Shown: positions 87-47,114 of the stretch, in pieces
Layout: each line of letters begins with the position of its first letter
Position numbering within the stretch: the first letter of the stretch is position 1
Sequence record: MN871440.1
Length of the DNA: 64,000 nt
Direction: 5' to 3' (one strand)
Made by a program: the position numbers and the translations under genes
The notes under the pieces: model-generated
What the model was told of the DNA's origin: nothing
Databases searched by the model: none
Seen by the model: the letters and a program-made list of their open reading frames with translations, nothing else

Positions 87-168
87 GGGAGATTGGTGTA
101 ATTGGTAGCCGCAGTGGATTCAAAATCTACCGTCTTCTGACGTACCGGTTCGAGTCCGGTATCTCCCA
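87..168 (+). tRNA. tRNA-Leu(CAA), CCA not encoded
   Basis: GGGAGAT/ATCTCCC acceptor; loop TT-CAA-AA; long variable arm; T loop TTCGAGT. Confidence 0.9.
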
Positions 169-176
169 CGAATTTC

Positions 177-261
177 GCGGATATGGCGTAATCGGTAGCC
201 GCAGGGGATTTAAAATCCCAAGTCTTCGGGCGTGTGGGTTCGAGTCCCACTATCCGCACCA
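177..261 (+). tRNA. tRNA-Leu(UAA)
   Basis: GCGGATA/TATCCGC-ACCA; loop TT-TAA-AA. Confidence 0.93.
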
Positions 262-282
262 AACAAAAAAGAGATTGACACG

Positions 283-519
283 TTGAAATTGATCTGTATA
301 CTAGACCAAGATGAAGACGGAACCTTTAGCGGTCGCGTCTACGGTTTAAACGGCATCTGTATCTTTGCAGGTGAACGTCATGAATACCCGAGTGTTGTCG
401 CGCTAGAAGCTGCGAACGCTCACATCGAAATGTCAAAGGAAATGAATTTTAAAGTTTTCGTTGACGACAACGTTGGAATCATTCAGAATGACCAACACGT
501 ATTTTCTATAACTGTTTAA
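283..519 (+). CDS. hypothetical protein (start uncertain)
   Basis: ORF 232..519 overlaps the tRNA; in-frame TTG at 283 used. Confidence 0.5.
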   Translation: MKLICILDQDEDGTFSGRVYGLNGICIFAGERHEYPSVVALEAANAHIEMSKEMNFKVFVDDNVGIIQNDQHVFSITV

Positions 520-528
520 GGAATTATA

Positions 529-918
529 ATGTCTCGTTTTATCGTATCTCCGGTTGCTGGTAACATCACTCGTTTCGTAGTCAACTCCGAAAAAGTAGTT
601 GGTCTGGTTAAAACTCACGGCGGTCAGACTCTAATCACTGTTAAAGTTGAAGGTCAACTGCCGACTGTTTATCAAGTTGCCGAGAAGTTCGAAGATCTGG
701 CACTCAAGCTGAAAGACTGCTTTATCAAACGAACTGTTGTTACTCCGGTCGAAAGTCGCGGTGTCGCCAAGTTCGTTGTGAATGCCGAAAAGATCGTCGG
801 TCTGCATGAAAACGTGCAAGGCGAAGTTATGCTGAGTATTCGCGTCGCTGAGTTCGAGCGTCCGACCCGTCTGATGATTGAAGAATCCATCGACGCTGTT
901 CTGGAAGCTATTGCTTAA
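529..918 (+). CDS. tandem two-repeat protein, FlbD/SwrD-like
   Basis: Two ~63-aa repeats (FVVNSEKVVGL / FVVNAEKIVGL); SD AAGGA. Confidence 0.7.
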   Translation: MSRFIVSPVAGNITRFVVNSEKVVGLVKTHGGQTLITVKVEGQLPTVYQVAEKFEDLALKLKDCFIKRTVVTPVESRGVAKFVVNAEKIVGLHENVQGEVMLSIRVAEFERPTRLMIEESIDAVLEAIA

Positions 919-926
919 CAATTTGG

Positions 927-950
927 AAGCCCCTTAACTGGGGCTTTTTT
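927..950 (+). terminator. intrinsic terminator
   Basis: AAGCCCC-ttaact-GGGGCTT then T run. Confidence 0.85.
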
Positions 951-974
951 GTAACTTATCAAAGGGAAAATATC

Positions 975-2078
975 GTGGGTTCTTTCAATACTATTTGTGG
1001 TGTCAGTCGTCATATCGTGACTTGTGGTGAGCCGGTTGTTTTACTCGCGCTTGTCTGTCACGGCGAAACAATTCCAGCCGCTCCGGGTTGCTATAACTGG
1101 GATCGATACCAGCTTGCCATGCATCTTCCACTGTATGCGACTTATGATGACTATGGCAACTTCGATATCGAAGACAACGACGCATATCAAGCGTTTCAAG
1201 ACATGGTAAAGACGCATATCGTTTGTGACGAAGATCGCAAGATCAACATTGATGATCTGTTTGATCCGAACAAGCTGATTTATCAGGACTTAATGCACGA
1301 GGAACAATTGTTTATTCAACCGGCTTCCTCGTTTATGGGTTCAAAGAAATCGCCAGTCATGTTCATGGTAATCAAGCGCAAAGTCTATGATCTGATGGTA
1401 GCGGAGTACGACCGCACATTGGAACAATCTTGGAACAAAGATTACGCTATCGAGTCTCACAAAAAGATTCGTGAAGTCTTCGCCAAGCTTGAAATTCGAG
1501 ATCCAGATAAAAAACGCTTGACTAAAGAAGAATTACAGTTGAGAATGGAAGAAATCGAGAAAGCGCCTGAAATCATTCGTGCTGAACTGACAAATGATCT
1601 GTGTAATGAATATCTCAGTATGGGTTTCTCTTGGGAATACGATAGTGTTATCAACATTGGAATGGGTCCTTACTCTAAAAACAATTTGACAAATCGTGTT
1701 ATTAAATTCACTGCCGCTAATGCAGAGCTGCATATCGGACTTCGTAAGTTTGTTAGCATGTTGTGTGAACTTAACATCGAGTTTAACCCGCAGCAATACG
1801 GCAGTCAGGACAATGATCATCTTTATCACGCCGATCTGATGACTCGAATCGTGGTAGCTGGTGCTGAGAATGATCAGTCTCGCGAATACCCGCTGAAAAT
1901 TCATCCGAAATTAGTTGTTGACTTGAATGCGGATGCTGTGTCAGAATACGTATCAGCTAATAAGTGGAAAGAAAACCCGGATCTGATTCATGACGAGAAC
2001 GGTAATCTTGTTCCGTCAATGAGGAAATACGGTGAGTTCAACGAGATTTCAAATATCGTGGAGTTCAAGGAGGTCTAA
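975..2078 (+). CDS. hypothetical protein, 367 aa
   Basis: Long ORF, SD GGGA, GTG start. Confidence 0.85.
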   Translation: MGSFNTICGVSRHIVTCGEPVVLLALVCHGETIPAAPGCYNWDRYQLAMHLPLYATYDDYGNFDIEDNDAYQAFQDMVKTHIVCDEDRKINIDDLFDPNKLIYQDLMHEEQLFIQPASSFMGSKKSPVMFMVIKRKVYDLMVAEYDRTLEQSWNKDYAIESHKKIREVFAKLEIRDPDKKRLTKEELQLRMEEIEKAPEIIRAELTNDLCNEYLSMGFSWEYDSVINIGMGPYSKNNLTNRVIKFTAANAELHIGLRKFVSMLCELNIEFNPQQYGSQDNDHLYHADLMTRIVVAGAENDQSREYPLKIHPKLVVDLNADAVSEYVSANKWKENPDLIHDENGNLVPSMRKYGEFNEISNIVEFKEV

Positions 2079-2153
2079 TCGTGAAAGACGAATGGCCTGA
2101 TTTCTAAGAGGTGGCTCGAAAGAGCCGCCATATTAATGCGATAACGTATTACT

Positions 2154-2480
2154 ATGGCTAATGAGGAAATGAAAATGAAAATTGATAATCTGTTTGACTT
2201 TATGGACGCTTTGCGTAAGCAAGACGCACCGGAAGACTTTATCGACTCCGACGGTATTGATACCGCATTGGAAGAGGTCGTAAATTATGAGCTGGGCAAA
2301 CCAAATCATGGCAGTCGTCACTTCTACGGATACGGATACAAGCTTGACATGAACTGGATCACCGTTTACTATGAACAAGGTTGTTCTTGCTGCAACGAAA
2401 AGGAAGATTATTCAATCCCTTATCAAAAGTTGTGGGATCATCTTGTAAAAACAAATCGAGTTGTGGAGATTGAAGAATGA
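2154..2480 (+). CDS. hypothetical protein
   Basis: ORF; stop overlaps next ATG. Confidence 0.75.
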   Translation: MANEEMKMKIDNLFDFMDALRKQDAPEDFIDSDGIDTALEEVVNYELGKPNHGSRHFYGYGYKLDMNWITVYYEQGCSCCNEKEDYSIPYQKLWDHLVKTNRVVEIEE

Positions 2481-2626
2481 AAACTGCCGCGATTCTGCCT
2501 AAGTCTGAGGCGATTGTTGATAAAGTGTTGGACTCTGAGTCTCGCTGGTATCAGGGTAGCTCCATTAACGTTACCAAACGTTCTGTAACTCGCGCGAAAG
2601 AAGTGTATTCCTGCGAAACTCGTTAA
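2477..2626 (+). CDS. small hypothetical protein (49 aa)
   Basis: ATGA coupling with upstream gene. Confidence 0.55.
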   Translation: MKTAAILPKSEAIVDKVLDSESRWYQGSSINVTKRSVTRAKEVYSCETR

Positions 2627-2653
2627 ATGTTTACTACTAAATAAAGGTGTAGT

Positions 2654-2878
2654 ATGATTAAGTTCTTGTTGATTACTTCGTTGTTCGTTAACTTTGGTAC
2701 CAATTATGGCTCACATAGTCATGCAATTGAGAAGTTCGACACCGAAGCAGAGTGCAGAGCCGCGCTGAAAGTCGCGGAAGAAAATGCACAAGATACATAT
2801 GGCGAGAATCGCGTTGGATTCTTCGGTGGTCAAACCAAGTTCGAAGGTCAATGCAAGCCATATTATTACGACAAGTAA
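2654..2878 (+). CDS. small exported protein
   Basis: Hydrophobic N-terminus, two Cys, SD AAGG. Confidence 0.7.
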   Translation: MIKFLLITSLFVNFGTNYGSHSHAIEKFDTEAECRAALKVAEENAQDTYGENRVGFFGGQTKFEGQCKPYYYDK

Positions 2879-2889
2879 AGATTTCGAGA

Positions 2890-3142
2890 TTCGAGAAACC
2901 GTAAGATCTTTCCGAGCATGTATTGGTGGCATCATGCTCGTATGAACGGGACCAGCGCCCACCTAGCTAGTTGACAGTAGACACTAAATAACTTAGTGAC
3001 AGTGGAACCCCTTGCGCTAACACTGTGATGCGGACTGTCTTTTTCTCGGTATGCCGTAAACCTAACGTGGAAGTGAACCCTTATTCGGTCTTCGGACTCA
3101 ACCGGCAGTAGCATGAAACAATGTGGGGATATCGAGAAAAAG
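2890..3142 (+). ncRNA. candidate structured ncRNA
   Basis: No ORF; hairpins CGAGCATG/CATGCTCG, AGCGC/GCGCT, CACTAA/TTAGTG, TGCCG/CGGCA, TTTTCTCG/CGAGAAAA. Confidence 0.5.
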
Positions 3143-3250
3143 ATTGTTTACTCTATTAAAACACTGTGCTATCATTATCACATGCTCTTAAAGTAGAGCA
3201 TAAATAAAAGATAGTTTACAGCGTTGATAAACCGTGATACAATCTTTATA

Positions 3251-3304
3251 AGGCTCCGTTCAGCAATCAAAACTTTTCTGCGGATGAAAAACAAAAGTGA
3301 GCCT
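3251..3304 (+). ncRNA. stem-UUCAGCAA motif copy 1 (skipping-rope-like)
   Basis: AGGCTC/GAGCCT closing stem; TTCAGCAA 3259-3266; AAAA before 3' strand. Confidence 0.6.
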
Positions 3305-3373
3305 GTTAGAGTAAAGATTTAAGAAGTCTTTATTTACAATCACTAAATAGTAGTGTATAGTAAACAAAGATAA

Positions 3374-3436
3374 AGAGTGATTTCAGCAACCAACTTAAAA
3401 AGCCATTATTTTGAAATAGCCTATAAAGTTCACTCT
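3374..3436 (+). ncRNA. stem-UUCAGCAA motif copy 2
   Basis: AGAGTGA/TCACTCT stem; TTCAGCAA 3382-3389. Confidence 0.6.
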
Positions 3437-3462
3437 GTTTCTTATTTGCAAGTTGTTATTTG

Positions 3463-3543
3463 GGAGACGTGGCTCAAAGGTTGAGCGACGGACTGTTAAT
3501 CCGTGAGGTTAACTCTATGCTGGTTCGAGTCCAGCCGTCTCCG
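3463..3543 (+). tRNA. tRNA-Asn(GUU) with long variable arm, no CCA
   Basis: GGAGACG/CGTCTCC-G; ACGGA-CT-GTT-AA-TCCGT. Confidence 0.85.
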
Positions 3544-3567
3544 CAAATAACAATTTACCGTGCTACG

Positions 3568-3672
3568 GAAGATTTCAGCAAACCATTCGAATTTTTCTAT
3601 TAACAAGAAAACAGTGAGGTTCGATTCCTCAACTCTCTAGCACAAGAGTCCAGGTGGCAGTTAAAAGTCTTC
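3568..3672 (+). ncRNA. stem-UUCAGCAA motif copy 3 with internal tRNA-like arms
   Basis: GAAGAT/GTCTTC stem; TTCAGCAA 3574-3581; T arm TGAGG-TTCGATT-CCTCA 3615-3631. Confidence 0.6.
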
Positions 3673-3680
3673 TAGTTTAT

Positions 3681-3755
3681 AGCCATGTAGCTCAGTGGTA
3701 GAGCACACCCCTGATAAGGGTGGGGTCGGCAGTTCAATCCTGCCCATGGCTACCA
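3681..3755 (+). tRNA. tRNA-Ile(GAU)
   Basis: AGCCATG/CATGGCT-ACCA; CACCC-CT-GAT-AA-GGGTG. Confidence 0.95.
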
Positions 3756-3761
3756 GTTTCT

Positions 3762-3838
3762 AGTGACGTAGTTTAGTTGGTTAAAATTCCGGCCTGTCAC
3801 GTCGGAGAGCGCGGGTTCGAGCCCCGTCGTCACTGCCA
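3762..3838 (+). tRNA. tRNA-Asp(GUC)
   Basis: AGTGACG/CGTCACT-GCCA; CT-GTC-AC loop. Confidence 0.95.
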
Positions 3839-3901
3839 GTTTCTACCTAGTAGGAAAAATGAACTTACCCGACAGTAGTTCAATGTTCTTTGAAAATGCA
3901 T

Positions 3902-4044
3902 GGATTCACTTCTGCAACCAATACAAAACTTCAAATCTACTATTAAAAGATAGCACTCCTTTACTTCGGTAGTTGGATGTGCGGCTGAGAGGGAACAGCA
4001 GGTAAAAGTAACGTGGGTTAGTCACCACTCCCGTATGTGAATCC
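3902..4044 (+). ncRNA. stem-UUCUGCAA motif copy 4 (long)
   Basis: GGATTCAC/GTGAATCC stem; TTCTGCAA 3910-3917. Confidence 0.55.
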
Positions 4045-4113
4045 GAAGACTTGCGTAGGTACTTGCATAAAGTGCCTATTCTAATGTATACTTGCGAGTA
4101 TCTATTAGAATTT

Positions 4114-4187
4114 GGGGGTTTAGCTCAGTTGGAACGAGCGACTGGTTTGCAACCAGTAGGTCAAGGGTTCGAGCCCCTTAACCTCCA
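4114..4187 (+). tRNA. tRNA-Ala(UGC), no CCA
   Basis: GGGGGTT/AACCTCC with G3:U70; ACTGG-TT-TGC-AA-CCAGT. Confidence 0.93.
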
Positions 4188-4256
4188 CAAATTTTTAGAG
4201 TAGCTATCAGCTCACCGTTGAAAGAATACGGATAAGTCGGCTCGACTACTCGAAGT

Positions 4257-4330
4257 GCCTCATTGGTGTAGTGGTCACATACCGTCCTTCCAAGTCGTAG
4301 TGTCGGGTTCGATTCCCGAATGAGGCTCCA
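4257..4330 (+). tRNA. tRNA-Gly(UCC), two anticodon-stem mismatches
   Basis: GCCTCAT/ATGAGGC-TCCA; CT-TCC-AA; stem CCGTC/GTCGT. Confidence 0.85.
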
Positions 4331-4339
4331 ATTTAACAT

Positions 4340-4414
4340 GCGCAGGTAGCCAAGAGGTAAGGCAAGTGATTGCAAATCACTTTATCGTCTGTTCGATCCA
4401 GATCCTGTGCTCCA
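4340..4414 (+). tRNA. tRNA-Cys(GCA)
   Basis: GCGCAGG/CCTGTGC-TCCA; AGTGA-TT-GCA-AA-TCACT. Confidence 0.93.
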
Positions 4415-4430
4415 AATTGAGAAATAAGTT

Positions 4431-4853
4431 ATGAGCGCACCTAGTTGGGCGCTGTTCATGAAGAACGGCGATTGTGTTGGACACTGCTTTATCAACTGCG
4501 GTTGGTTTCAAGATGATGTTCGAACACTGAGGCAGATCATTAGATATACAGAAACGCCTGAATGTCCTATTGACTTTGATAGCGTAATCGCGTATGGTGT
4601 TGTCTATAGCGATGATTTGGAATTCGAACTTCTGAAAGCAGAAGAGACGGAAATCAAGTCTAAGCAGATTTCGGCGATTAAAAGACAACAGTATTGGGAT
4701 AAAGGAAATCAAGTGATCTTCAATAGACTTTCTGTTAGTCCTAGACTCGCTCCAAAGCTGATTGCTGATGAAATTTGCGGTGTTCAGCCTATGTCTGAAC
4801 ATACTTCGAAAATCTATACGCTAAGGGTTGACACCGATGTTGTTTCTTGCTAA
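4431..4853 (+). CDS. hypothetical protein
   Basis: ORF with SD between tRNAs. Confidence 0.75.
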   Translation: MSAPSWALFMKNGDCVGHCFINCGWFQDDVRTLRQIIRYTETPECPIDFDSVIAYGVVYSDDLEFELLKAEETEIKSKQISAIKRQQYWDKGNQVIFNRLSVSPRLAPKLIADEICGVQPMSEHTSKIYTLRVDTDVVSC

Positions 4854-5037
4854 GATACGTTATATGAAAAGCGAATACATGGGATCATCTAAGTCATTCG
4901 ATACCATTAAGTTGGTAGAAGCGGAAGATGTGGATGATGCCGATTGTAAAGTTCGCGCACATTACAACGATAAAAGTTCGGATTACGGCACGTATTATTC
5001 CGTTCTTGATGTCACAATCGAAGCTCCTATTCTGTAG
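4828..5037 (+). CDS. hypothetical protein
   Basis: ORF; start uncertain. Confidence 0.65.
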   Translation: MTPMLFLAKIRYMKSEYMGSSKSFDTIKLVEAEDVDDADCKVRAHYNDKSSDYGTYYSVLDVTIEAPIL

Positions 5038-5044
5038 GTGAAAA

Positions 5045-5224
5045 ATGAATAAAGTAAGGTTTACAAAGCTTGAGGTTCAGCGTATGATGGAACTCATGCA
5101 GATGCACGAAACGAACTTGATTGATGTTGAATATCAAAGCGGTTCAATCGGTACTGTAGTTAGTGCTAAAGCTGTCAAAGATGGAGCAAAGAGCGTTCCT
5201 ATTACGGATTTTGATAGCTGGTAA
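5045..5224 (+). CDS. hypothetical protein (59 aa)
   Basis: SD AGGTG; MNKVRFTKLEV... Confidence 0.65.
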   Translation: MNKVRFTKLEVQRMMELMQMHETNLIDVEYQSGSIGTVVSAKAVKDGAKSVPITDFDSW

Positions 5225-5230
5225 GAATAT

Positions 5231-5301
5231 AGGGGCGTAGCAAATCGGTTATGCGGCGGATTCCAAATCCGTTGAGGTGGGTTCGACTCCTACCGCCCCT
5301 G
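5231..5301 (+). tRNA. tRNA-Trp(CCA), no CCA end
   Basis: AGGGGCG/CGCCCCT-G; GCGGA-TT-CCA-AA-TCCGT. Confidence 0.92.
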
Positions 5302-5310
5302 CAAAACAAT

Positions 5311-5386
5311 GCGCTGTTAGCTCAATTGGTAGAGCTGCGGACCTTTAACCGATAGGTTGGTGGATCATACCCACCACGGCGGACCA
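5311..5386 (+). tRNA. aberrant tRNA-Lys(UUU)-like
   Basis: Canonical D arm and ACCA end; loop CC-TTT-AA; stem lacks base 39; T loop ATCATAC; G1:G72. Confidence 0.6.
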
Positions 5387-5388
5387 AA

Positions 5389-5567
5389 TAGTCGAGTCAA
5401 GCAATAGGCTATATACTTATTGCGTGGCGATAGGCTATAAAAAGCGGTGATTGTTGTGTGGGGCGAATAACTTAAACGTTACTATTGACACCAACGCGCT
5501 TCTTATACTGCGGCCTATATAGCGGTAGTATAAGTTAAATCAATATTATTGCCTCGGTATCGACTCT
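5389..5567 (+). ncRNA. candidate structured ncRNA
   Basis: GTCGA/TCGAC and GCAATA/TATTGC closing helices; CTTATACT/AGTATAAG hairpin. Confidence 0.45.
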
Positions 5568-5578
5568 TGATACCGTAT

Positions 5579-5653
5579 AGTGAATTAGCTCAGTGGTAGA
5601 GCAAGTGCTTCATACGCACTGGGTCACTGGTTCGAATCCAGTATTCACTACCA
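5579..5653 (+). tRNA. tRNA-Met/Ile2(CAU), elongator type
   Basis: AGTGAAT/ATTCACT-ACCA; AGTGC-TT-CAT-AC-GCACT. Confidence 0.92.
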
Positions 5654-5700
5654 AATTCAATCGCGCTTAAACCTCTGACTCGTTACGTTTAAGCCTTCTC

Positions 5701-5774
5701 GGGGACGTAGATAACTTCATAATCGCAGGTCACTGGGATCTGAGATACGAGTGGAAATCCCGCCGTCTCCACCA
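5701..5774 (+). ncRNA. degenerate tRNA-like RNA (CUG loop)
   Basis: GGGGACG/CGTCTCC-ACCA; CAGGT-CACTGGG-ATCTG; no TTC T loop. Confidence 0.55.
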
Positions 5775-5775
5775 A

Positions 5776-5907
5776 ATTTAAGTGCATTGCCCTAACCTAA
5801 ATGGGACGAGATAAGCCCTCGTATGTAGCTAAGAGCCGCAAGCTTGTGCGAACAAAGGCTAGTAGGTGGGAACCACCTGCGGGGATCGCGACAGTGCATT
5901 TAAATTT
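5776..5907 (+). ncRNA. candidate multibranch ncRNA
   Basis: About 15-bp closing helix plus 4-5 internal hairpins. Confidence 0.5.
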
Positions 5908-5945
5908 GGTACTAAATAGACTTGCTATTAAAGGAGTTTATAGAA

Positions 5946-6185
5946 ATGAGCAATGATTTAGACGCTCGCGCCAATCGTGGCTCGGGTAATCAGTGTAGTG
6001 CAGCATGGTACAATGCCCCTTTGTGGAAGAACGTTGGACCGCTTGCTAGAAAGAAAGCTGCGGAAGCAGCAGAAAAAGAAAAACAAAAAGATGTTTACTC
6101 TACTGCGGAAACATGCGATAATGTCTCTGTTGTCGAAGAAGACTTAAAAGCAAAACAAAGACGATTGTTTAGTTTCGCTTACTGA
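5946..6185 (+). CDS. hypothetical protein
   Basis: SD AAGGAG then ATG 5946. Confidence 0.7.
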   Translation: MSNDLDARANRGSGNQCSAAWYNAPLWKNVGPLARKKAAEAAEKEKQKDVYSTAETCDNVSVVEEDLKAKQRRLFSFAY

Positions 6186-6189
6186 CAGA

Positions 6190-6265
6190 TCTCCGTTCGT
6201 CTAGTGGACTAGGACACTGCCCTTTCACGGCGGTAACATGGATTCGAATTCCATACGGAGAACCA
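6190..6265 (+). tRNA. tRNA-Glu(UUC)
   Basis: TCTCCGT/ACGGAGA-ACCA; CT-TTC-AC. Confidence 0.93.
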
Positions 6266-6285
6266 AATTGATTAGTGCGCTAAGA

Positions 6286-6359
6286 TGCGAGTTGGAGGAG
6301 AGGCCGTCCTCGCTGGGCTCATATCCCAGAGATCACCTGTTCGAATCAGGTACTCGCTT
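6286..6359 (+). tRNA. initiator-type tRNA-fMet(CAU), no CCA
   Basis: 1:72 mismatch; CTGGG-CT-CAT-AT-CCCAG with three G-C pairs. Confidence 0.85.
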
Positions 6360-6384
6360 CTTAGCGTACTAAATAAAGAATAAT

Positions 6385-6476
6385 GGATGTGCTGCAATGA
6401 CGGTGGTATTGCACCAGACTGTAAATCTGGCCCCACAGGGTAAACGTTGTAGGTTCGAATCCTACCGCATCCACCA
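6385..6476 (+). tRNA. tRNA-Tyr(GUA)
   Basis: GGATGTG/CGCATCC-ACCA; CCAGA-CT-GTA-AA-TCTGG; long variable arm. Confidence 0.93.
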
Positions 6477-6485
6477 ATTTAAAAC

Positions 6486-6570
6486 GCTCGGTTGGCAGAG
6501 TGGTTGAATGCACTGGTTTTGTAATCCAGACCGAAAGGCATCGCAAGTTCGAATCTTGTGCCGAGCACCA
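6486..6570 (+). tRNA. tRNA-Thr(UGU) with class II body
   Basis: GCTCGGT/GCCGAGC-ACCA; TT-TGT-AA; variable hairpin CC-GAAA-GG. Confidence 0.8.
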
Positions 6571-6651
6571 TAAGAGGGATCCAGATGCCCCGTTTGTAGC
6601 ATCTGGTGTGTAACTCGTTACATAAATGCTTTCTTTCGAGTGATCATTTAT

Positions 6652-6727
6652 GTGGCGGTAGTTCAGTTGGTAGAACTCCAGGTTGTGATCCTGGTAGTCA
6701 CGGGTTCGAAGCCCGTCCGTCACCCCA
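6652..6727 (+). tRNA. tRNA-His(GUG)
   Basis: GTGGCGG/CCGTCAC-CCCA; TT-GTG-AT; position -1 is T. Confidence 0.93.
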
Positions 6728-6734
6728 AAATTTT

Positions 6735-6811
6735 GCATCGGTAACTCAGTATGGTAGAGTGGCGGATTGAAAATCCGCTGGTCACTGGTTCAAGTCCAGT
6801 CCGATGCACCA
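6735..6811 (+). tRNA. tRNA-Phe(GAA)
   Basis: GCATCGG/CCGATGC-ACCA; GCGGA-TT-GAA-AA-TCCGC. Confidence 0.95.
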
Positions 6812-6819
6812 AGTTCAAT

Positions 6820-6944
6820 CGCTTTGAAAGGTGAAATCGCTAATGCTTTTAAGTGCAATGAGATAGCTTCTCGAAAGTCGGGATATAGATTGCCCCGTCG
6901 GTATTGATTTCATGTGGAGTTCGATTCTCTACCTTAGCGTCCCA
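6820..6944 (+). ncRNA. tRNA-like RNA with T arm, long arm and CCA end
   Basis: GTGGAG-TTCGATT-CTCTAC; TGAAATC/GATTTCA; ends CGTCCCA. Confidence 0.5.
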
Positions 6945-6959
6945 TTTTATAAGAATATT

Positions 6960-7033
6960 CCGTCATTAGCGCAGTCCGGTAGCGCATCTGGTTTGGGATC
7001 AGAGGGTCATAGGTTCAAATCCTATATGACGGA
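6960..7033 (+). tRNA. tRNA-Pro(UGG), no CCA
   Basis: CCGTCAT/ATGACGG-A; TT-TGG-GA. Confidence 0.92.
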
Positions 7034-7146
7034 CAAAATTGATTCAGCGTTGCGTTGAATGATGTGGGGTTACACAAAGTAGGATTAAGTTACCGAAACG
7101 ATAAGACGATGACCCACGTTAAACGTTCATATTCGTCCCAGTTTAT

Positions 7147-7219
7147 AGGGGTATAGCCAAGTTGGTAAGGCAACGGACTTTGATTCCGTCATGCACTGGT
7201 TCGAGCCCAGTTACCCCCG
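7147..7219 (+). tRNA. tRNA-Gln(UUG), no CCA
   Basis: AGGGGTA/TACCCCC-G; ACGGA-CT-TTG-AT-TCCGT. Confidence 0.92.
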
Positions 7220-7360
7220 CATTTTTAGCTTGCTAAAGGCTAAATGAGCTGCTATGATTCCCGTAGCTCGTTAAATTATCAAACGGGAAGGTGATGCGCG
7301 TGTGTAGCCAGAACGTAATGTTCAAGAGTCATGACGACATAAAGCCGTGTCGAAGAATTT

Positions 7361-7455
7361 GGAAGCGTGGCAGAGTCCGGCTTATTGCACCAGTCTTGAA
7401 AACTGACGGCGAGGTATCCCCTCGTCCATCCGTTCGAATCGGATCGCTTCCGCCA
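7361..7455 (+). tRNA. tRNA-Ser(UGA)
   Basis: GGAAGCG/CGCTTCC-GCCA; CT-TGA-AA; long variable arm. Confidence 0.95.
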
Positions 7456-7479
7456 AATCAAACAATAGAGAGTTATATC

Positions 7480-7701
7480 ATGAAAGCAACAAAACAAGAT
7501 CTTGAGCTGGCATCCCGTTTCGCTGATAAAGCTGATTCATACGGTTTCGCTACTACTCAAGGTGATGCTAAGTGTACCAATCAACAGATTGAAAAGCTGT
7601 TAAAACTTGGACTTATCAAAGTTAGTCGCGGTGTTCATTGCATTGGACAAAAAGACTTTGGCGGTTTTGTTCGAAGAGGAACTCACTATTGCAAAGCTTA
7701 A
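7480..7701 (+). CDS. hypothetical protein
   Basis: SD GAGAG, ATG 7480 downstream of tRNA-Ser. Confidence 0.7.
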   Translation: MKATKQDLELASRFADKADSYGFATTQGDAKCTNQQIEKLLKLGLIKVSRGVHCIGQKDFGGFVRRGTHYCKA

Positions 7702-7811
7702 AACAAGAGATCGAGGAAAACGTAAGAGCCTCGTTCGTGTTATCCGGTCAGCGTGTTACTGATTCTCAATGGGAACAGATTAAACGAGCTGCTGAATACA
7801 TCAAAGAACAT

Positions 7812-7899
7812 GGAGAAATGACAGAGAGGCCGAACGTAGCGGATTGCTAATTCGTAGGCCCGCAAGGGTCCGTGGGTTCGAATCCCACTTTCTCCTCCA
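7812..7899 (+). tRNA. tRNA-Ser(GCU)
   Basis: GGAGAAA/TTTCTCC-TCCA; TT-GCT-AA; U73. Confidence 0.9.
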
Positions 7900-7905
7900 A
7901 ATAAT

Positions 7906-7990
7906 GCGGATGTGGTGAAATTGGCAGTCACACTAGATTTAGGATCTAGCGCCTCCGGGCATGTCGGTTCGAGTCCGACCATCCGTACCA
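7906..7990 (+). tRNA. tRNA-Leu(UAG)
   Basis: GCGGATG/CATCCGT-ACCA; CTAGA-TT-TAG-GA-TCTAG. Confidence 0.95.
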
Positions 7991-13562: not shown

Positions 13563-15005
13563 TTGTCTAAGTTTATGAATGCAATGACTCAAGCGCAAGC
13601 ACTGGCACGTACCGCTAACGGTGCAGTTACTAACTATACCACTGGTGATAAGTGTCTGAATCTGTTTTCTCAAATCGGTTCCGCTCGCGGTAAAGATCTG
13701 AGTTCCATGTTTGTGGAAGCTTACACCGAATCTCCGGATTGGGCAGTTCGTATTCTGCAATGGGCTCGCGATATTCGCGGTGGTGCTGGTGAGCGTGAAC
13801 AGTTCATTCGTCTGCTGAAACTGCTGGCACATCGTCATCAAGTTGACGCTACCGTCGTTCTGATGAACACACCGGAAATCGGTCGTTATAAGGACGTTGT
13901 TTCAATGATTGGTACTCCAATCGAAGATGCTGCGGTCGCTATCATGGTGGACGCGATTCTGATCAAACAGAACGGTCTTGCTGCTAAGTGGGCTCCTCGC
14001 AAAGGCAAAGAAGCTGGTATTCTGGCCAAAGCTATGCGTATGACTGCTAAAGAGTATCGTCAGACAATCGTCCGTATGTCGAACACCGTTGAACAAAAAA
14101 TGTGTGCTCGTCAGTGGGATGGAATTGATTTCGGTAAACTGCCGTCTGTTGCATCTGCCCGATATCAGAAAGCATTCCTGAAAAATGCGAATGAGCGTTA
14201 TGTTGCTTATCTTGAGTCTCTGAAAAAGGGCGAAGCTAAGATCAACGCTGGTGCTGTGTACCCGTATGACATGATCAAATCATTGCGTACCGGTTCTTCT
14301 GTTGCTGCTGATGCACAATGGAAAGCACAACGCGACTGGATGGCTGGCTCTACTGAAAACGTAATCGCAATGGTTGACGTTTCTGGCTCTATGAGCACCC
14401 CGACTGCCGTCGCTGGTCTGTCTGCTATGGATATCGCGATCTCTTTGGGTCTGTATATCGGTGAACGCTCTGGTGGTGTGTTCAAGAACGAAGTGATTAC
14501 CTTCGATGATAATCCTCAGTTCTACAACATCAAAGCGAAAGGCGATGATCTGCAAAGCATGGTGAATCATCTGGGACGCGCTCCGTGGGGTGGTTCTACC
14601 AACTTCGCTGGTGCATTCAAGATCATTCTTGATCGTGCCGTGAAACATCGAGTTCCGCAGTCTGATATGCCGTCTATGATGGTTGTATTGTCTGACATGG
14701 AATTCAACGTTGCAGACGGCGGTTATAGCGGATACTATCGTATGCGTGACCGCGAACGTACCAACTTTGAGGTGATTCGTCAGACTTACCGCGATGCTGG
14801 TTACGAAATGCCGAAACTTGTGTTCTGGAATCTTTGCCCGCGCCCGACTAACAATCCGGTGACCAAAGACGATCAAGGCACTGCGTTGGTATCTGGTTTT
14901 AGTCCTGCAATCATGGAGACAATCCTGAGTGCAAAAGAGTTTAACCCGATGCAAATCATGCTTGACAAGATCATGAGCGACCGATACGTCGGTATTGATT
15001 TCTAA
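13563..15005 (+). CDS. TROVE-like / vWA protein (DUF2828 type)
   Basis: ARDIRGGAGER; AAKWAPR; MIDAS VDVSGSM; GSTNF; VLSDMEF; FWNL. Confidence 0.85.
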   Translation: MSKFMNAMTQAQALARTANGAVTNYTTGDKCLNLFSQIGSARGKDLSSMFVEAYTESPDWAVRILQWARDIRGGAGEREQFIRLLKLLAHRHQVDATVVLMNTPEIGRYKDVVSMIGTPIEDAAVAIMVDAILIKQNGLAAKWAPRKGKEAGILAKAMRMTAKEYRQTIVRMSNTVEQKMCARQWDGIDFGKLPSVASARYQKAFLKNANERYVAYLESLKKGEAKINAGAVYPYDMIKSLRTGSSVAADAQWKAQRDWMAGSTENVIAMVDVSGSMSTPTAVAGLSAMDIAISLGLYIGERSGGVFKNEVITFDDNPQFYNIKAKGDDLQSMVNHLGRAPWGGSTNFAGAFKIILDRAVKHRVPQSDMPSMMVVLSDMEFNVADGGYSGYYRMRDRERTNFEVIRQTYRDAGYEMPKLVFWNLCPRPTNNPVTKDDQGTALVSGFSPAIMETILSAKEFNPMQIMLDKIMSDRYVGIDF

Positions 15006-16368: not shown

Positions 16369-16681
16369 AATGCTCTATCTGCTGATAATCGGTCATTTTG
16401 TGGCCGATTACGTCTTGCAAACTGATAGCATTGCAAGAGGAAAGAATCCTATCAACTCACCGCTCTATGGAGTGCATTGGCTTTACTGGCTAACTGCGCA
16501 TAGTGCTACTCATGCGCTCGTTGTTTACATTGCAACCAAGAGCGTCTGGCTGAGTTTGACAGAGCTTGTAAGTCACTGGATCATCGATTATGCTAAGTGT
16601 AATGGCAAAATCGGATTACACCAAGATCAGGCGCTACATATTTTTTGTAAAATTTTGATTGCTGCCTGTTTTATCGCTTGA
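16361..16681 (+). CDS. DUF3307-like membrane protein
   Basis: GHFVADYVLQ; H..TH; SHWIIDY.K; DQALH. Confidence 0.85.
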   Translation: MFEMLYLLIIGHFVADYVLQTDSIARGKNPINSPLYGVHWLYWLTAHSATHALVVYIATKSVWLSLTELVSHWIIDYAKCNGKIGLHQDQALHIFCKILIAACFIA

Positions 16682-16714
16682 CAACTAAATCGATGTCTCT
16701 ATAATGGGGACATC
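16678..16714 (+). promoter_or_regulatory. early promoter, -10 inside inverted repeat
   Basis: TTGACA-N16-TATAAT; GATGTCTC/GGGACATC. Confidence 0.8.
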
Positions 16715-16732: not shown

Positions 16733-17209
16733 ATGAGTATGAAAGCTTTGGCAAAACTGTTGTTCCCGAATACTTATACCGCAATCGTAGAAGAAGGCAA
16801 GTGGGCTGGGATCGAACAGAAGCGCAAAGAGTACGAAGAACAGAAAGAGAAAGATCGTTTGATCATGCTTTCATACAAACGTCCTCTTGGTATTCCCATG
16901 ATCTCGTTTGATGGTTCTGGTAATGTTCGCGTCGTTGTTAACACGGATTACATGTATGACGGTGCCGTGACTAAATGTGTAGATCTGATTTCTGGTGAAG
17001 AGTTCATTGACTTCACTACTCAGATCCGATACAGTGAGGAATTCGCGGAGCTAGTCGCACGTAATCAGATCGAAGATGTTTACGCTTTGATTCATCGCGG
17101 TAACGCCAAGATCATGAAAATGAATCCGAATCGTGAGCCGTGTGTTCGTTTGAAATTCAAGCTGGCAGTGAAAAATTTCAACGAAAAGGGTTTACCTTCT
17201 AAGAAATAA
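16733..17209 (+). CDS. hypothetical protein
   Basis: SD GAGG. Confidence 0.8.
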   Translation: MSMKALAKLLFPNTYTAIVEEGKWAGIEQKRKEYEEQKEKDRLIMLSYKRPLGIPMISFDGSGNVRVVVNTDYMYDGAVTKCVDLISGEEFIDFTTQIRYSEEFAELVARNQIEDVYALIHRGNAKIMKMNPNREPCVRLKFKLAVKNFNEKGLPSKK

Positions 17210-17222: not shown

Positions 17223-17353
17223 TTTGTTGTCGCGATTAGTTCAGTGGGAGAACACCTTTGATCGCAAAGAAGTATCGAGTACGGTTCGAATCCGTTATAG
17301 TGTGGGCACATCGAGAAACGTCGTTGGTTCGAATCCAACATCGCGACAACAAA
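17223..17353 (+). ncRNA. tRNA-like RNA with two T arms and 14-bp acceptor helix
   Basis: D arm; TTCGAAT hairpins 17281-17295 and 17323-17339; no anticodon arm; no CCA. Confidence 0.7.
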
Positions 17354-17364
17354 CAACATTATGC

Positions 17365-17478
17365 TGGCGGTTCGTCTAGTGGTAGGACACTGTAAAATTC
17401 ATTCTGACAAGAATGTTTTCCGCAATAAATAATCGCCTGTTAAGCCTGTAACGCTCGGTTCGAATCCGGCACCGCCAG
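17365..17478 (+). ncRNA. tRNA-Asn-like body with insertion in the anticodon arm
   Basis: TGGCGGT/ACCGCCA-G; D arm; insert 17394-17425; CT-GTT-AA 17437-17443. Confidence 0.7.
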
Positions 17479-17497
17479 CATAGTGTTGTGAAAATTT

Positions 17498-17617
17498 GGG
17501 GAAGTAGCTCAGTGGTAGAGCAGTAGACGCAAAAAGCGGAATCTGAGAAGATTCTTTACAGCAAGCCAACGCAAATTAAACTATTGGTCGCGGGTTCGAG
17601 TCCCGTCTTCCCCGCCA
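17498..17617 (+). ncRNA. tRNA body with ~50-nt insertion in the anticodon loop
   Basis: GGGGAAG/CTTCCCC-GCCA; perfect D and T arms; insert 17529-17575. Confidence 0.8.
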
Positions 17618-46259: not shown

Positions 46260-46583
46260 ATGAAAAAATCAATTCTGGCTATCGCTCTGTTTTCTATGAT
46301 CGGTTCTGCTAACGCTGCTATTAGCATGAGTCGTCCAATGACTATCAGCCGACCGATGACCGTATCGCGTCCAGTCTCAGTTAGCGCACCGGTTCGCCCT
46401 GCTACTACAGTGAGCAATGTCGCAGTTCATACCAACACTGCCGCAAACGTGGTAACTACCATGATGCTTATGAATGCTATGCAGAATGGTAACGATCAAC
46501 AAGTCGATAATGGTACTAACGAAGAAGAGGTGCTGTGTGATGATTCCGTTCTTCCCGAAGAATGTGAAGAATCTGGCAACTAA
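46260..46583 (+). CDS. exported low-complexity protein
   Basis: Signal peptide; SRPM(T) repeats. Confidence 0.75.
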   Translation: MKKSILAIALFSMIGSANAAISMSRPMTISRPMTVSRPVSVSAPVRPATTVSNVAVHTNTAANVVTTMMLMNAMQNGNDQQVDNGTNEEEVLCDDSVLPEECEESGN

Positions 46584-47073
46584 GATAGCAATGGCGTTTG
46601 TGGTTTGTTCTGCAAACGCCGCTATTGTAGATCAGTCGGATTTCTATAATCAGTTGATTGCCAACAATAAGGAAGCGGTTGCTTGTTCTGGCGTTGGCGT
46701 CAATCAGTTTTACACTATTTCATTTTATATCAAAGATCATACTACAGTGATGGAGGTAACTGAGAACTTTAATAAAAAGGTTTTGTTTCAGTTGCCGAAA
46801 CGAGAGGACCACGATAAGTTTGTTAGGTTTATCGAGAGATCGAATTCTATCGTAACCGAATCCGTGTTCAAATCTAAAGACATTCAAGTCGGTCGAATGA
46901 AAATCAATGATTCAAGACTTGGTGTTAGAACGTCAAAAGAGAACGTGATTTTTGATATGAATAGCGACGGTGATTTTACCACGTTGACTATCAAGAAAGA
47001 AAAACTTGGTGAGCTAATTCAGTGTGTAAAAAACGTGGATTATGCGAGAAAAGTCCTTGACGTAGAATACTGA
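46564..47073 (+). CDS. exported protein
   Basis: GTG 46564 gives signal peptide MKNLATKIAMAFVVCSANA. Confidence 0.65.
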   Translation: MKNLATKIAMAFVVCSANAAIVDQSDFYNQLIANNKEAVACSGVGVNQFYTISFYIKDHTTVMEVTENFNKKVLFQLPKREDHDKFVRFIERSNSIVTESVFKSKDIQVGRMKINDSRLGVRTSKENVIFDMNSDGDFTTLTIKKEKLGELIQCVKNVDYARKVLDVEY

Positions 47074-47114
47074 TCTGTTAAGATAGCTACATCAAAACAA
47101 AAGAGGAATACATC

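Follow-up and report, generated by a model that had tools for sequence, protein, structure and literature searches.

Two tRNA-shaped phage RNAs carry a permuted copy of a small-RNA module found beside DUF2828 genes

Ro60/Y-RNA particles are known from animals, bacteria, and a few phages, and the tRNA-like domain of the bacterial Y RNAs is still unexplained. YrlA-type Y RNAs are encoded beside Ro60 genes; one part of each is an end helix bound by Ro, and the other is a tRNA-like domain with a capped acceptor (Chen et al. 2014, PMC4201824). A Ro60-Yrl system is also present in the Thermus phage phiLo (PMC12135203). The Class I RNAs of Dictyostelium (RF01414) are a second group of small RNAs to which the present locus can be compared. 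They have an 11-nucleotide (nt) motif, CCUUACAGCAA, in which T3, C6, C9, A10, and A11 are near-invariant (Kjellin et al. 2021, PMC7919456), and they follow the pattern GTTGRCCTTACAGCAA...GTCAACTG (PMC5054030). Here, a 64,000-nt stretch of sequence record MN871440.1 (the window) was analyzed. Two tRNA-shaped bodies in the window, B1 (17366-17483, + strand) and B2 (17498-17617, + strand), carry a conserved RNA module in the anticodon-arm region. The module is homologous to free small RNAs that are found beside genes for DUF2828 proteins, and it is circularly permuted with respect to them.

Results

The B1 and B2 inserts are permuted copies of free small RNAs

A covariance model, R1, was built from 49 non-redundant free RNAs that come from 35 loci beside DUF2828 genes; none of the RNAs belongs to this phage group and none is embedded in a tRNA. 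The 3′ end of each RNA was joined in silico to its 5′ end before the alignment and the model were made; each joined unit runs from 12 nt upstream through the 3′ strand and the join (2 nt + 2 nt) to the 5′ strand, the linker, and the motif. The in silico joins read GUAA, GAAA, or GGGA, which is the GNNA type of the natural caps. A search of the whole window (128 kb of strand) gave the B2 insert (17526-17570, +; 35.2 bits, E = 1.2e-6) as the top match and the B1 insert (17387-17431, +; 31.6 bits, E = 1e-5) as the second, with E-values that come from a short calibration, and the next match scored 19 bits. Four free small RNAs of the window (F1-F4) were matched by R1 through the motif alone, as expected of unpermuted copies. 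The model also recovers embedded copies in other phages. The third match (47058-47101, +; 19.1 bits, E = 0.02) reads GAUCU-GUUA-AGAU followed by CUACAUCAAA; it spans the end of the open reading frame (ORF) at 46474-47073 and the next intergenic spacer and is probably due to chance.

The order of the parts is the same in both inserts. In B1, an A-tract (17394-17397) precedes the hairpin CATTCT-GACA-AGAATG (17400-17415), which is followed by the motif TTTTCCGCAA (17416-17425). The B2 insert has an A-tract at 17531-17535, the hairpin GGAATCT-GAGA-AGATTCT at 17538-17555, and the motif TTACAGCAA at 17556-17564, after which the sequence reads GCCAAC. Common to the two are the A-tract, a 6-7 bp hairpin capped by GNNA (GACA or GAGA), and UU(N)CNGCAA, present as UUUUCCGCAA or UUUACAGCAA. 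A preliminary description of the locus had quoted 17394-17425 as AAAA-TT-CATTCT-GACA-AGAATG-TTTTCCGCAA and 17531-17564 as AAAAA-GCG-GAATCT-GAGA-AGATTC-TTTACAGCAA, and both stretches are present as quoted. It had read them as the module of the free copies in permuted form: a cap closes the helix, and the tRNA takes the place of the cargo. The permuted covariance model, a check that the description itself had proposed, ranks the inserts as the two best matches of the window and relates them to the free copies; together with the relatives it strongly supports this interpretation.

The module is structurally constrained. In an alignment of 36 embedded copies the hairpin is 95% paired, and six of the seven pairs change on both sides. 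The covariation score of the hairpin in these copies is 0.515 versus 0.117 after shuffling, and none of 500 shuffles reached 0.515. The window is 99-100% identical to the Aeromonas salmonicida T4-like phages AsFcp_1, AsFcp_4, and PX29 (Straboviridae, Angelvirus) and 77-89% identical to Aeh1, Ah1, avDM12, phiAS5, and phiWae14. B1, B2, and a third tRNA-like body, B0, are all kept in six related Aeromonas phages. The interior of B1 is nearly invariant in seven phages, and its T-stem changes from CTCGG/CCGGC to CTGGG/CCCAG. Compensatory changes in B2 affect the D-, T-, and anticodon stems as well as the insert hairpin (Aeh1, avDM12, Ah1, phiAS5, phiWae14); for example, the insert stem GAATCT/AGATTC becomes GATTCT/AGAATC in phiAS5. 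The inserts are better conserved than the flanking genes. Folding z-scores of single sequences are weak (-0.4 to -2.6) and not decisive. These results establish that the module in the inserts is real, homologous to the free RNAs, permuted, and under structural constraint.

Module RNAs are linked to DUF2828 genes in many phages

The proposed binding partner is encoded in the window at 13563-15005 (+ strand) and contains DUF2828 (PF11443), DUF7788 (PF25043), and vWA domains by Pfam. An AlphaFold model of this ORF has a predicted local distance difference test score of 86 and a predicted template modeling (TM) score of 0.86. Comparison of the model with Ro60/TROVE structures by Foldseek gave full-length matches to the Thermus phage Ro60 (9kop) and to the Xenopus (1yvr, 1yvp) and human (9nf8, 9nep) structures, with E-values of 6e-9 to 7e-8 and TM scores of 0.53-0.64. 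The sequence profile of the ORF matches the Ro60 entries of the PDB at E = 0.6, and Pfam assigns it to DUF2828/DUF7788, not to TROVE. The protein is predicted by its model to fold like Ro60. The link to a TROVE-like protein drawn in the preliminary description is supported by this predicted fold and by genomic association.

DUF2828 homologues are abundant, with 710 matches among GenBank phage records and more than 7000 protein clusters. Many of these phages come from tRNA-rich groups (Felixounavirus, KVP40-like phages, and phages of Campylobacter, Listeria, Enterococcus, Staphylococcus, Bacillus, and Mycobacterium). An alignment query was used to collect 78 DUF2828 loci from IMG/VR; a single-protein query returned close relatives alone. 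The pattern TT[AT]?C.GCAA occurs 58 times on the coding strand and 14 times on the other strand in the first 500 nt downstream of the 78 genes. Its density there is 1.55 per kb versus ~0.15 per kb elsewhere, an enrichment of ~10-fold. A strict composite (helix of at least 7 bp, linker, motif, and G) is found at DUF2828 loci 147 times on the + strand versus 20 times on the - strand. The first hairpin scan of the DUF2828 flanks had returned mostly noise.

Individual loci show the same arrangement. In the window, 2.2 kb separate the end of the DUF2828 gene (15005) from B0-B2, which follow it on the same strand (17226-17617). In the FelixO1-like phage CL1, a tRNA cluster directly after the DUF2828 gene holds four free copies; F1 and F2 have clear homologues among them, and one copy has a T-arm, a capped acceptor, and a D-arm. 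In Aeromonas phage APT65, of another genus, the 1.2 kb upstream of the DUF2828 gene hold five free copies and two embedded ones, and the embedded copies of loci L201 and L048 adjoin the gene. Three RNAs follow a DUF2828-type gene in the mycobacteriophage Snenia (L332, 3981-4245); they have the helix GUGGAC../..GUCCAG and (A)CAGCAA, and the middle one is YrlA-like, with T-arm, capped acceptor, and D-arm. The Snenia gene is annotated as "RNA-binding protein," and related mycobacteriophages have it as "Ro-like RNA binding protein."

A pattern scan of IMG/VR for the embedded form returned 114 loci, about 31 of which are tRNA-like genes with a capped module on unrelated contigs and in different tRNA bodies. 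The same pattern, applied to one genome per bacterial and archaeal species, gave no true embedded copy among the 120 matches listed. The bodies that carry the module vary and have Glu-, Lys-, Asp-, and Tyr-like loops. In most relatives the module is located between nucleotide 26, on the D-arm side, and a complete anticodon hairpin, not in the loop. The B1-like relatives (L036, L051, L066, L079, L086, L114) have the hairpin UUCC-AUNNNAA-GGAA after the module, and just the three "anticodon" letters vary between contigs (UUC, GUC, UCU, GUU). In Vibrio phage nt-1, a single non-coding stretch of 1.8 kb contains one free copy together with three embedded ones. The embedded module is widespread in phage tRNA-like genes, and module RNAs are tightly linked to DUF2828 genes.

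B1 and B2 are tRNA-shaped bodies with an altered anticodon arm

B2 is a good tRNA in all parts except the anticodon arm. It has a 7-bp acceptor stem (GGGGAAG/CTTCCCC), U8, G73, an encoded CCA (the body ends GCCA), the D-arm GCTC-AGTGGTA-GAGC, and a T-arm. The anticodon stem GTAG/CTAT closes around an insert of 52-54 nt. The Rfam tRNA model RF00005 (gathering score 29 bits) gives B2 54.3 bits, but only by allowing 54 nt of insertion in the anticodon arm. The CCA end and the 7-nt direct repeat ACGCAAA (17527 and 17569) of the preliminary description were both confirmed. Direct repeats flank the module in several phages: ACGCAAA occurs twice in B2 (17527-17533 and 17569-17575), UCGAAA twice in phiAS5, and AUAGC twice in L035 and L048. 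The GCG that immediately precedes the hairpin of B2 is a possible pairing partner for either repeat copy, as CGC..GCG in the window and as CGA..UCG in phiWae14.

B1 is further from a tRNA. Its acceptor stem TGGCGGT/ACCGCCA is lengthened to 11 bp by ATGC/GCAT (17362-17486), and it has G73 and no CCA. The D-arm is of the Glu type (GTCT-AGTGGTA-GGAC, TTCGTCTAGTGG), the T-arm is CTCGG-TTCGAAT-CCGGC, and the anticodon arm is swapped for the module and a degenerate GC-CTGTTAA-GC hairpin. RF00005 gave no match to B1 even at E-values up to 10, and ARAGORN made no call. A D-loop GG and a T-loop TTCGA(A/G)T with covarying stems are common to B1 and B2. Two claims of the preliminary description are revised by these data. 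The two canonical anticodon loops that it saw in B1 exist as heptamers (CTGTAAA at 17390-17396 and CTGTTAA at 17437-17443) but lack a proper stem; against a tRNA norm of a 5-bp stem, a 7-nt loop, and U33, the heptamer CUGUUAA is closed by just 2 bp. The assignment of both bodies as Asn-like from G73 is not supported: B1 has a D-arm of the tRNA-Glu type, and G73 does not diagnose tRNA identity.

A first alternative to protein-binding RNAs on a tRNA scaffold is that B1 and B2 are intron-containing tRNAs, from which an endonuclease and a ligase would excise the insert to leave functional tRNAs (Asn-GUU from B1; Cys, Leu, or Val from B2) together with a small, perhaps circular, DUF2828-binding RNA. 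Annotation pipelines do call B2 an intron-containing tRNA, and the canonical acceptor stem and CCA of B2 are in keeping with this. The same can be said of the invariant CUGUUAA of B1, of the B1-like hairpin in which just the anticodon letters vary, and of the RNA ligase genes in these phages (gp57B annotations). The identities assigned to B2 disagree, however. It is recorded as a tRNA-Leu with an intron in PX29 and as tRNA-Val(CAC) in Aeh1, and ARAGORN returns Cys or Trp depending on the flanks; these four identities come without U33. The putative anticodon differs among close relatives (CAA, CAC, none), whereas the body is conserved. With introns disallowed, ARAGORN called none of the 36 embedded copies; with introns allowed it called 22 with arbitrary anticodons and left 14 without a call. 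The predicted insertion positions scatter over 31-40 and are not fixed at 37/38, and the module is 5′ of a complete anticodon hairpin in most relatives. Neither a bulge-helix-bulge motif nor a group I core is present. The phage already encodes tRNA-Asn(GUU) and tRNA-Cys(GCA), and B1 lacks CCA and ends in a helix of 11 bp. The term "intron-like" in the preliminary description is not sustained: excision yields no conserved canonical anticodon loop, and gene finders disagree on the identity. An intron is an unlikely explanation of the inserts.

A second alternative is that B1 and B2 are tRNA-shaped decoys that act independently of the Ro60-like protein and soak up anticodon nucleases of the host or other tRNA-targeting defense enzymes through anticodon-like heptamers. 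Three UGU-type heptamers in B1 (CUGUAAA, CUGUUAA, CUGUAAC) point in this direction, as do relatives that vary just the anticodon letters and the presence of DUF2828 genes and their RNAs in or beside phage tRNA clusters. Such decoys leave the conserved helix and CAGCAA module, its free versions, and its tight linkage to DUF2828 unaccounted for, and B2 has no anticodon-like hairpin of any kind. We regard independent decoys as quite unlikely.

It is very improbable that the inserts are a selfish small mobile element that entered tRNA genes with a 7-nt target-site duplication and has no function for the phage. This reading draws on the flanking direct repeats (ACGCAAA twice in B2, ATAGC twice in L035 and L048) and on the occurrence of the module in tRNA bodies of differing type. 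Against it, the inserts outconserve the flanking genes and have compensatory stem changes, which is a pattern of purifying selection; the repeat co-varies in both copies among relatives and shows no decay, and the orientation and place of the module in the tRNA fold are constant. No transposase or homing endonuclease was seen beside the copies in the loci inspected, where no systematic search was made. The module is also homologous to expressed-type free RNAs with their own promoters. The mobile element suggested in the preliminary description is not borne out.

Intron, mobile-element, and promoter readings of the inserts (ALTERNATIVES) were all considered and are not supported. Sigma-70-like matches within the inserts (17404-17433 and 17555-17582) occur at the level of chance (4 versus 2.2 ± 1.4), and the promoter reading was rejected because of this count and because it leaves the covarying helices unexplained. 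Chance likeness of two degenerate pseudo-tRNAs to upstream repeats, an idea prompted by the 8-mer alone being common (129 window matches at up to one mismatch), is refuted by the R1 E-values of ~1e-6 and 1e-5 with nothing else above 19 bits except one match at 19.1 in 128 kb of strand, and by conservation and covariation of the inserts in relatives and in unrelated phages.

No Rfam family other than tRNA was found for the inserts or for F1-F4 at gathering scores or at E-values up to 10, apart from sub-threshold matches to Class I and JA04. In an informal comparison, to our knowledge the conserved positions fit none of the hammerhead (CUGANGA), twister, pistol, hatchet, k-turn, sarcin-ricin, or preQ1-I motifs.

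Free small RNAs and the surroundings of B1 and B2

The free copies of the preliminary description exist on the + strand and are non-coding, with TTCAGCAA at 3259, 3382, and 3574 and TTCTGCAA at 3910. The signature of the family is a short helix, 5′-AAGAWUNN / NNAWUCUG-3′, followed by (C)CUUACAGCAA / UUCNGCAA. F1 (3251-3305, +) has the helix GGCTC/GAGCC, the motif GTTCAGCAA, and the 3′ end ..CCTGT; it is preceded by its own promoter of the early type, TTTACA-17-TACAAT (3215-3243), and its terminal helix covaries, changing to GGCTG/CAGCC in phiAS5. F2 (3374-3440, +) has an early-type promoter of its own at 3333-3361, the motif TTTCAGCAA, and the 3′ tail GTTT, and its helix AGAGTGA/TCACTCT becomes GGAATGA/TCATTCC in relatives. 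F3 (3566-3675, +) is YrlA-like, with the helix GGAAGAT/GTCTTCT, the motif TTTCAGCAA, the T-arm GAGGTTCGATTCCTC, and a capped acceptor-like hairpin. Its true terminal helix, corrected here, is 3567-3573 / 3666-3672 and has two compensatory changes, in Aeh1 and avDM12. F4 (3902-4044, +) has the helix GGATTCAC/GTGAATCC, the motif TTCTGCAA, and ~115 nt of structured cargo.

In F1-type RNAs the motif (CGUUC-A-GCA in the window at 3251-3305; UAUUC-A-GCAA in CL1, at L132 21879-21940) is complementary to a conserved downstream UGC-GGAUG or UUGC-GGAUA, respectively. A self-sequestered form of these RNAs may exist, because the pairing between motif and downstream sequence covaries between the window phage and CL1. 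Between ORF 2654-2878 and F1, ~250 nt (2890-3140, +) are strongly conserved and non-coding, with several hairpins. This stretch can be aligned across Aeh1, avDM12, Ah1, and phiAS5 and matches no Rfam family at threshold.

A large tRNA cluster occupies 87-7990 of the window. The tRNA-Asn(GUU) gene (3463-3544, +) has an 11-nt extra variable region, which is unusual for tRNA-Asn. B0, B1, and B2 form a separate group at 17226-17617, flanked by ORF 16733-17209 and an rI.1-like ORF. B0 (17226-17350, +) is directly upstream of B1. A 13-bp helix (TTGTTGTCGCGAT/ATCGCGACAACAA) pairs its ends, and the body further contains a D-arm, two T-arms (17278-17294 and 17321-17337), and a short anticodon-like hairpin. 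Relatives keep B0, with compensatory changes, and it lacks the CAGCAA module. ARAGORN calls part of it tRNA-Ala(CGC), and the Rfam score is 22 bits. A perfect consensus promoter of the sigma-70 type (TTGACA-16-TATAAT; 16678-16705, +) is upstream of ORF 16733-17209 and the B0-B1-B2 cluster, an arrangement that suggests co-transcription of the ORF and the three bodies from this promoter.

Discussion

B1 and B2 as candidate partners of the Ro60-like protein

A permuted copy of the DUF2828-adjacent RNA module replaces the anticodon arm in B1 and B2; therefore, both are probably RNA partners of the DUF2828 protein and not ordinary or intron-containing tRNAs. We favor the reading, with a probability of about 0.6, that B1 and B2 are Y-RNA-like non-coding partners of the phage Ro60-like protein on a tRNA scaffold. 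The module would be the binding site of this protein, and the bodies would present a tRNA-shaped part with a free acceptor end. The tRNA-scaffolded regulators or decoys of the preliminary description fit the evidence. Several points weigh on the other side. The association of RNA and protein is purely genomic, and the embedded copies of phage nt-1 lie ~15 kb from its DUF2828 gene. The counts at the 78 DUF2828 loci overstate the number of independent events because related contigs are included. The rules for choosing the free set fixed the motif, required a G after the 3′ strand, and set a minimum helix length of 7 bp; some of what R1 learned was therefore built in. The acceptor stem of B2 is perfect and comes with G73 and CCA, and B1-type relatives keep anticodon-like loops that vary solely in the three anticodon letters; these features hint at a role related to decoding or aminoacylation, outside the Y-RNA reading.

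If B1 and B2 are partners of the Ro60-like protein, an early transcript would start at the 16678 promoter and would be processed at the tRNA-like ends. Each RNA is expected to fold as an L-shaped body with the module projecting from the D/anticodon junction, a structure that covariation supports. The GNNA loop that caps the module links the two helix ends (..CUG-NN-AAG..), and the opening in the tRNA-like domain is at the natural acceptor end. Genomic association suggests that the module binds the Ro60-like protein. The ribonucleoprotein would then couple the tRNA-shaped handle to the ring and, more speculatively, may draw in tRNA-binding enzymes or tRNA-targeting nucleases during infection, or compete for them; equally speculative is that the particle joins tRNA surveillance and repair. 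Y RNAs tether Ro60 to PNPase, and this is the analogy for the role of the handle.

The loci described here indicate a much larger phage family, with DUF2828 and its own RNA signature, that is usually located beside phage tRNA clusters. The family includes a permuted form that leaves a tRNA end free. It offers a handle on what Ro-like rings do with tRNA-shaped RNAs and on how tRNA-rich phages manage or protect their tRNA pools. The "intron-containing" and "pseudo" tRNA annotations in several phages, among them the PX29 tRNA-Leu and the Aeh1 tRNA-Val, are probably wrong. A "Val CAC" and three pseudo-tRNAs were listed without comment (Nolan et al. 2006, PMC1524935). The preliminary description knew of no account of this arrangement, and no paper was found in the full-text literature that links DUF2828, YrlA-type or Class I RNAs, and phage or that describes the embedded form.

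Tentatively, the DUF2828 protein and its CAGCAA-motif RNAs could be a second widespread branch of the Ro60/Y-RNA type, with the Dictyostelium Class I RNAs in the same RNA family, although we consider this more doubtful than not. Were it true, the Class I RNAs would be the "Y RNAs" of a DUF2828-type ring protein, and B1 and B2 would be the first RNAs with a real, possibly chargeable tRNA end wired to the ring via a permuted module. A device of this kind might serve in infection to deliver, shield, or sequester factors that handle tRNA.

Comparison with known systems

Intron-containing tRNAs of the archaeal and eukaryal bulge-helix-bulge kind, and the bacterial group I introns in anticodon loops, resemble B1 and B2 in that the anticodon-arm region of a tRNA-like gene is interrupted, and gene finders report B2 in this way. 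They differ in that the insert of B1 and B2 is itself a conserved, functional-looking module and no mature anticodon loop is conserved. The stable RNA species 1 and 2 of T4 (rnaC and rnaD) are also associated with a tRNA cluster and have tRNA-like features, including a T-arm in rnaC. They have neither the CAGCAA module nor a matching helix, and the T4 region gave no composite matches; no DUF2828 gene was found within the 5-kb stretch of T4 inspected. The consensus of the Aggregatibacter small RNA JA04 (RF02732) holds AAAAUUGGUUCCUUA, which corresponds to the 5′ helix strand and the start of the motif in one phage subgroup. This match is partial and below threshold (15.6 bits versus 81; L138, 5471-5532). 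JA04 may be a prophage-derived member of the DUF2828-adjacent RNAs.

The Rfam consensus of the Class I RNAs is GaUcuCCUUACAGCAA...GagAuCUG. The free phage RNAs share with it a 5′ AAG start, a 6-8 bp helix that joins the ends, a variable interior, and a 3′ ..CUG(U). The motif CCUUACAGCAA directly follows the 5′ strand in these RNAs, and T3, C6, C9, A10, and A11 are kept. When the inserts were compared with the 11-mer, B2 (CUUUACAGCAA) matched at 10 of 11 positions, and B1 (GUUUUCCGCAA) matched at 7 of 11, including all five near-invariant ones. The end-joining stem (AAG/CUGU) is present in F1-F4 and the free relatives, whereas the stem of B1 and B2 is closed by GNNA, equivalent to joined ends (..CUG-NN-AAG..). 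Scores with the Class I model stay below the gathering score of 41.5 bits (17.1 for F1, 24 and 19.7 for the CL1 copies, 21.5 for the L138 copy), and at that score there were no matches in 131 kb of DUF2828 loci. The Class I RNAs are dictyostelid and reported as unique to Dictyostelia, and neither a tRNA-like cargo nor a Ro-like partner is known for them. The phage RNAs provide a handle on the binding partners of Class I RNAs because the motif and the architecture are common to both groups.

The YrlA-type Y RNAs are similar in organization. In both systems small RNAs adjoin, on the same strand, the gene for a ring protein of the TROVE+vWA type (in the phage, by its predicted fold), with several RNAs per protein. 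A protein-binding helix (putative in the phage RNAs), an adjacent conserved single-stranded motif, and a tRNA-like domain with T-arm, D-arm, and acceptor are also common to both. The YrlA topology, in which the RNA ends in the binding helix and the acceptor is capped, is exact in F3 and in relatives in CL1, L181, L184, and Snenia; in F3 and many relatives, the tRNA-like domain forms the cargo of the RNA. The differences concern the protein, the motif, and the connectivity. The phage protein belongs to DUF2828/DUF7788, and its predicted kinship to Ro60 lies at the level of the fold alone. The motif is (C)CUUACAGCAA / UUCNGCAA, not GNCGAAN0-1G / GGUCCGA. B1 and B2 are permuted with respect to YrlA: GNNA caps the putative binding helix, and the acceptor forms the open end, which in B2 has CCA.

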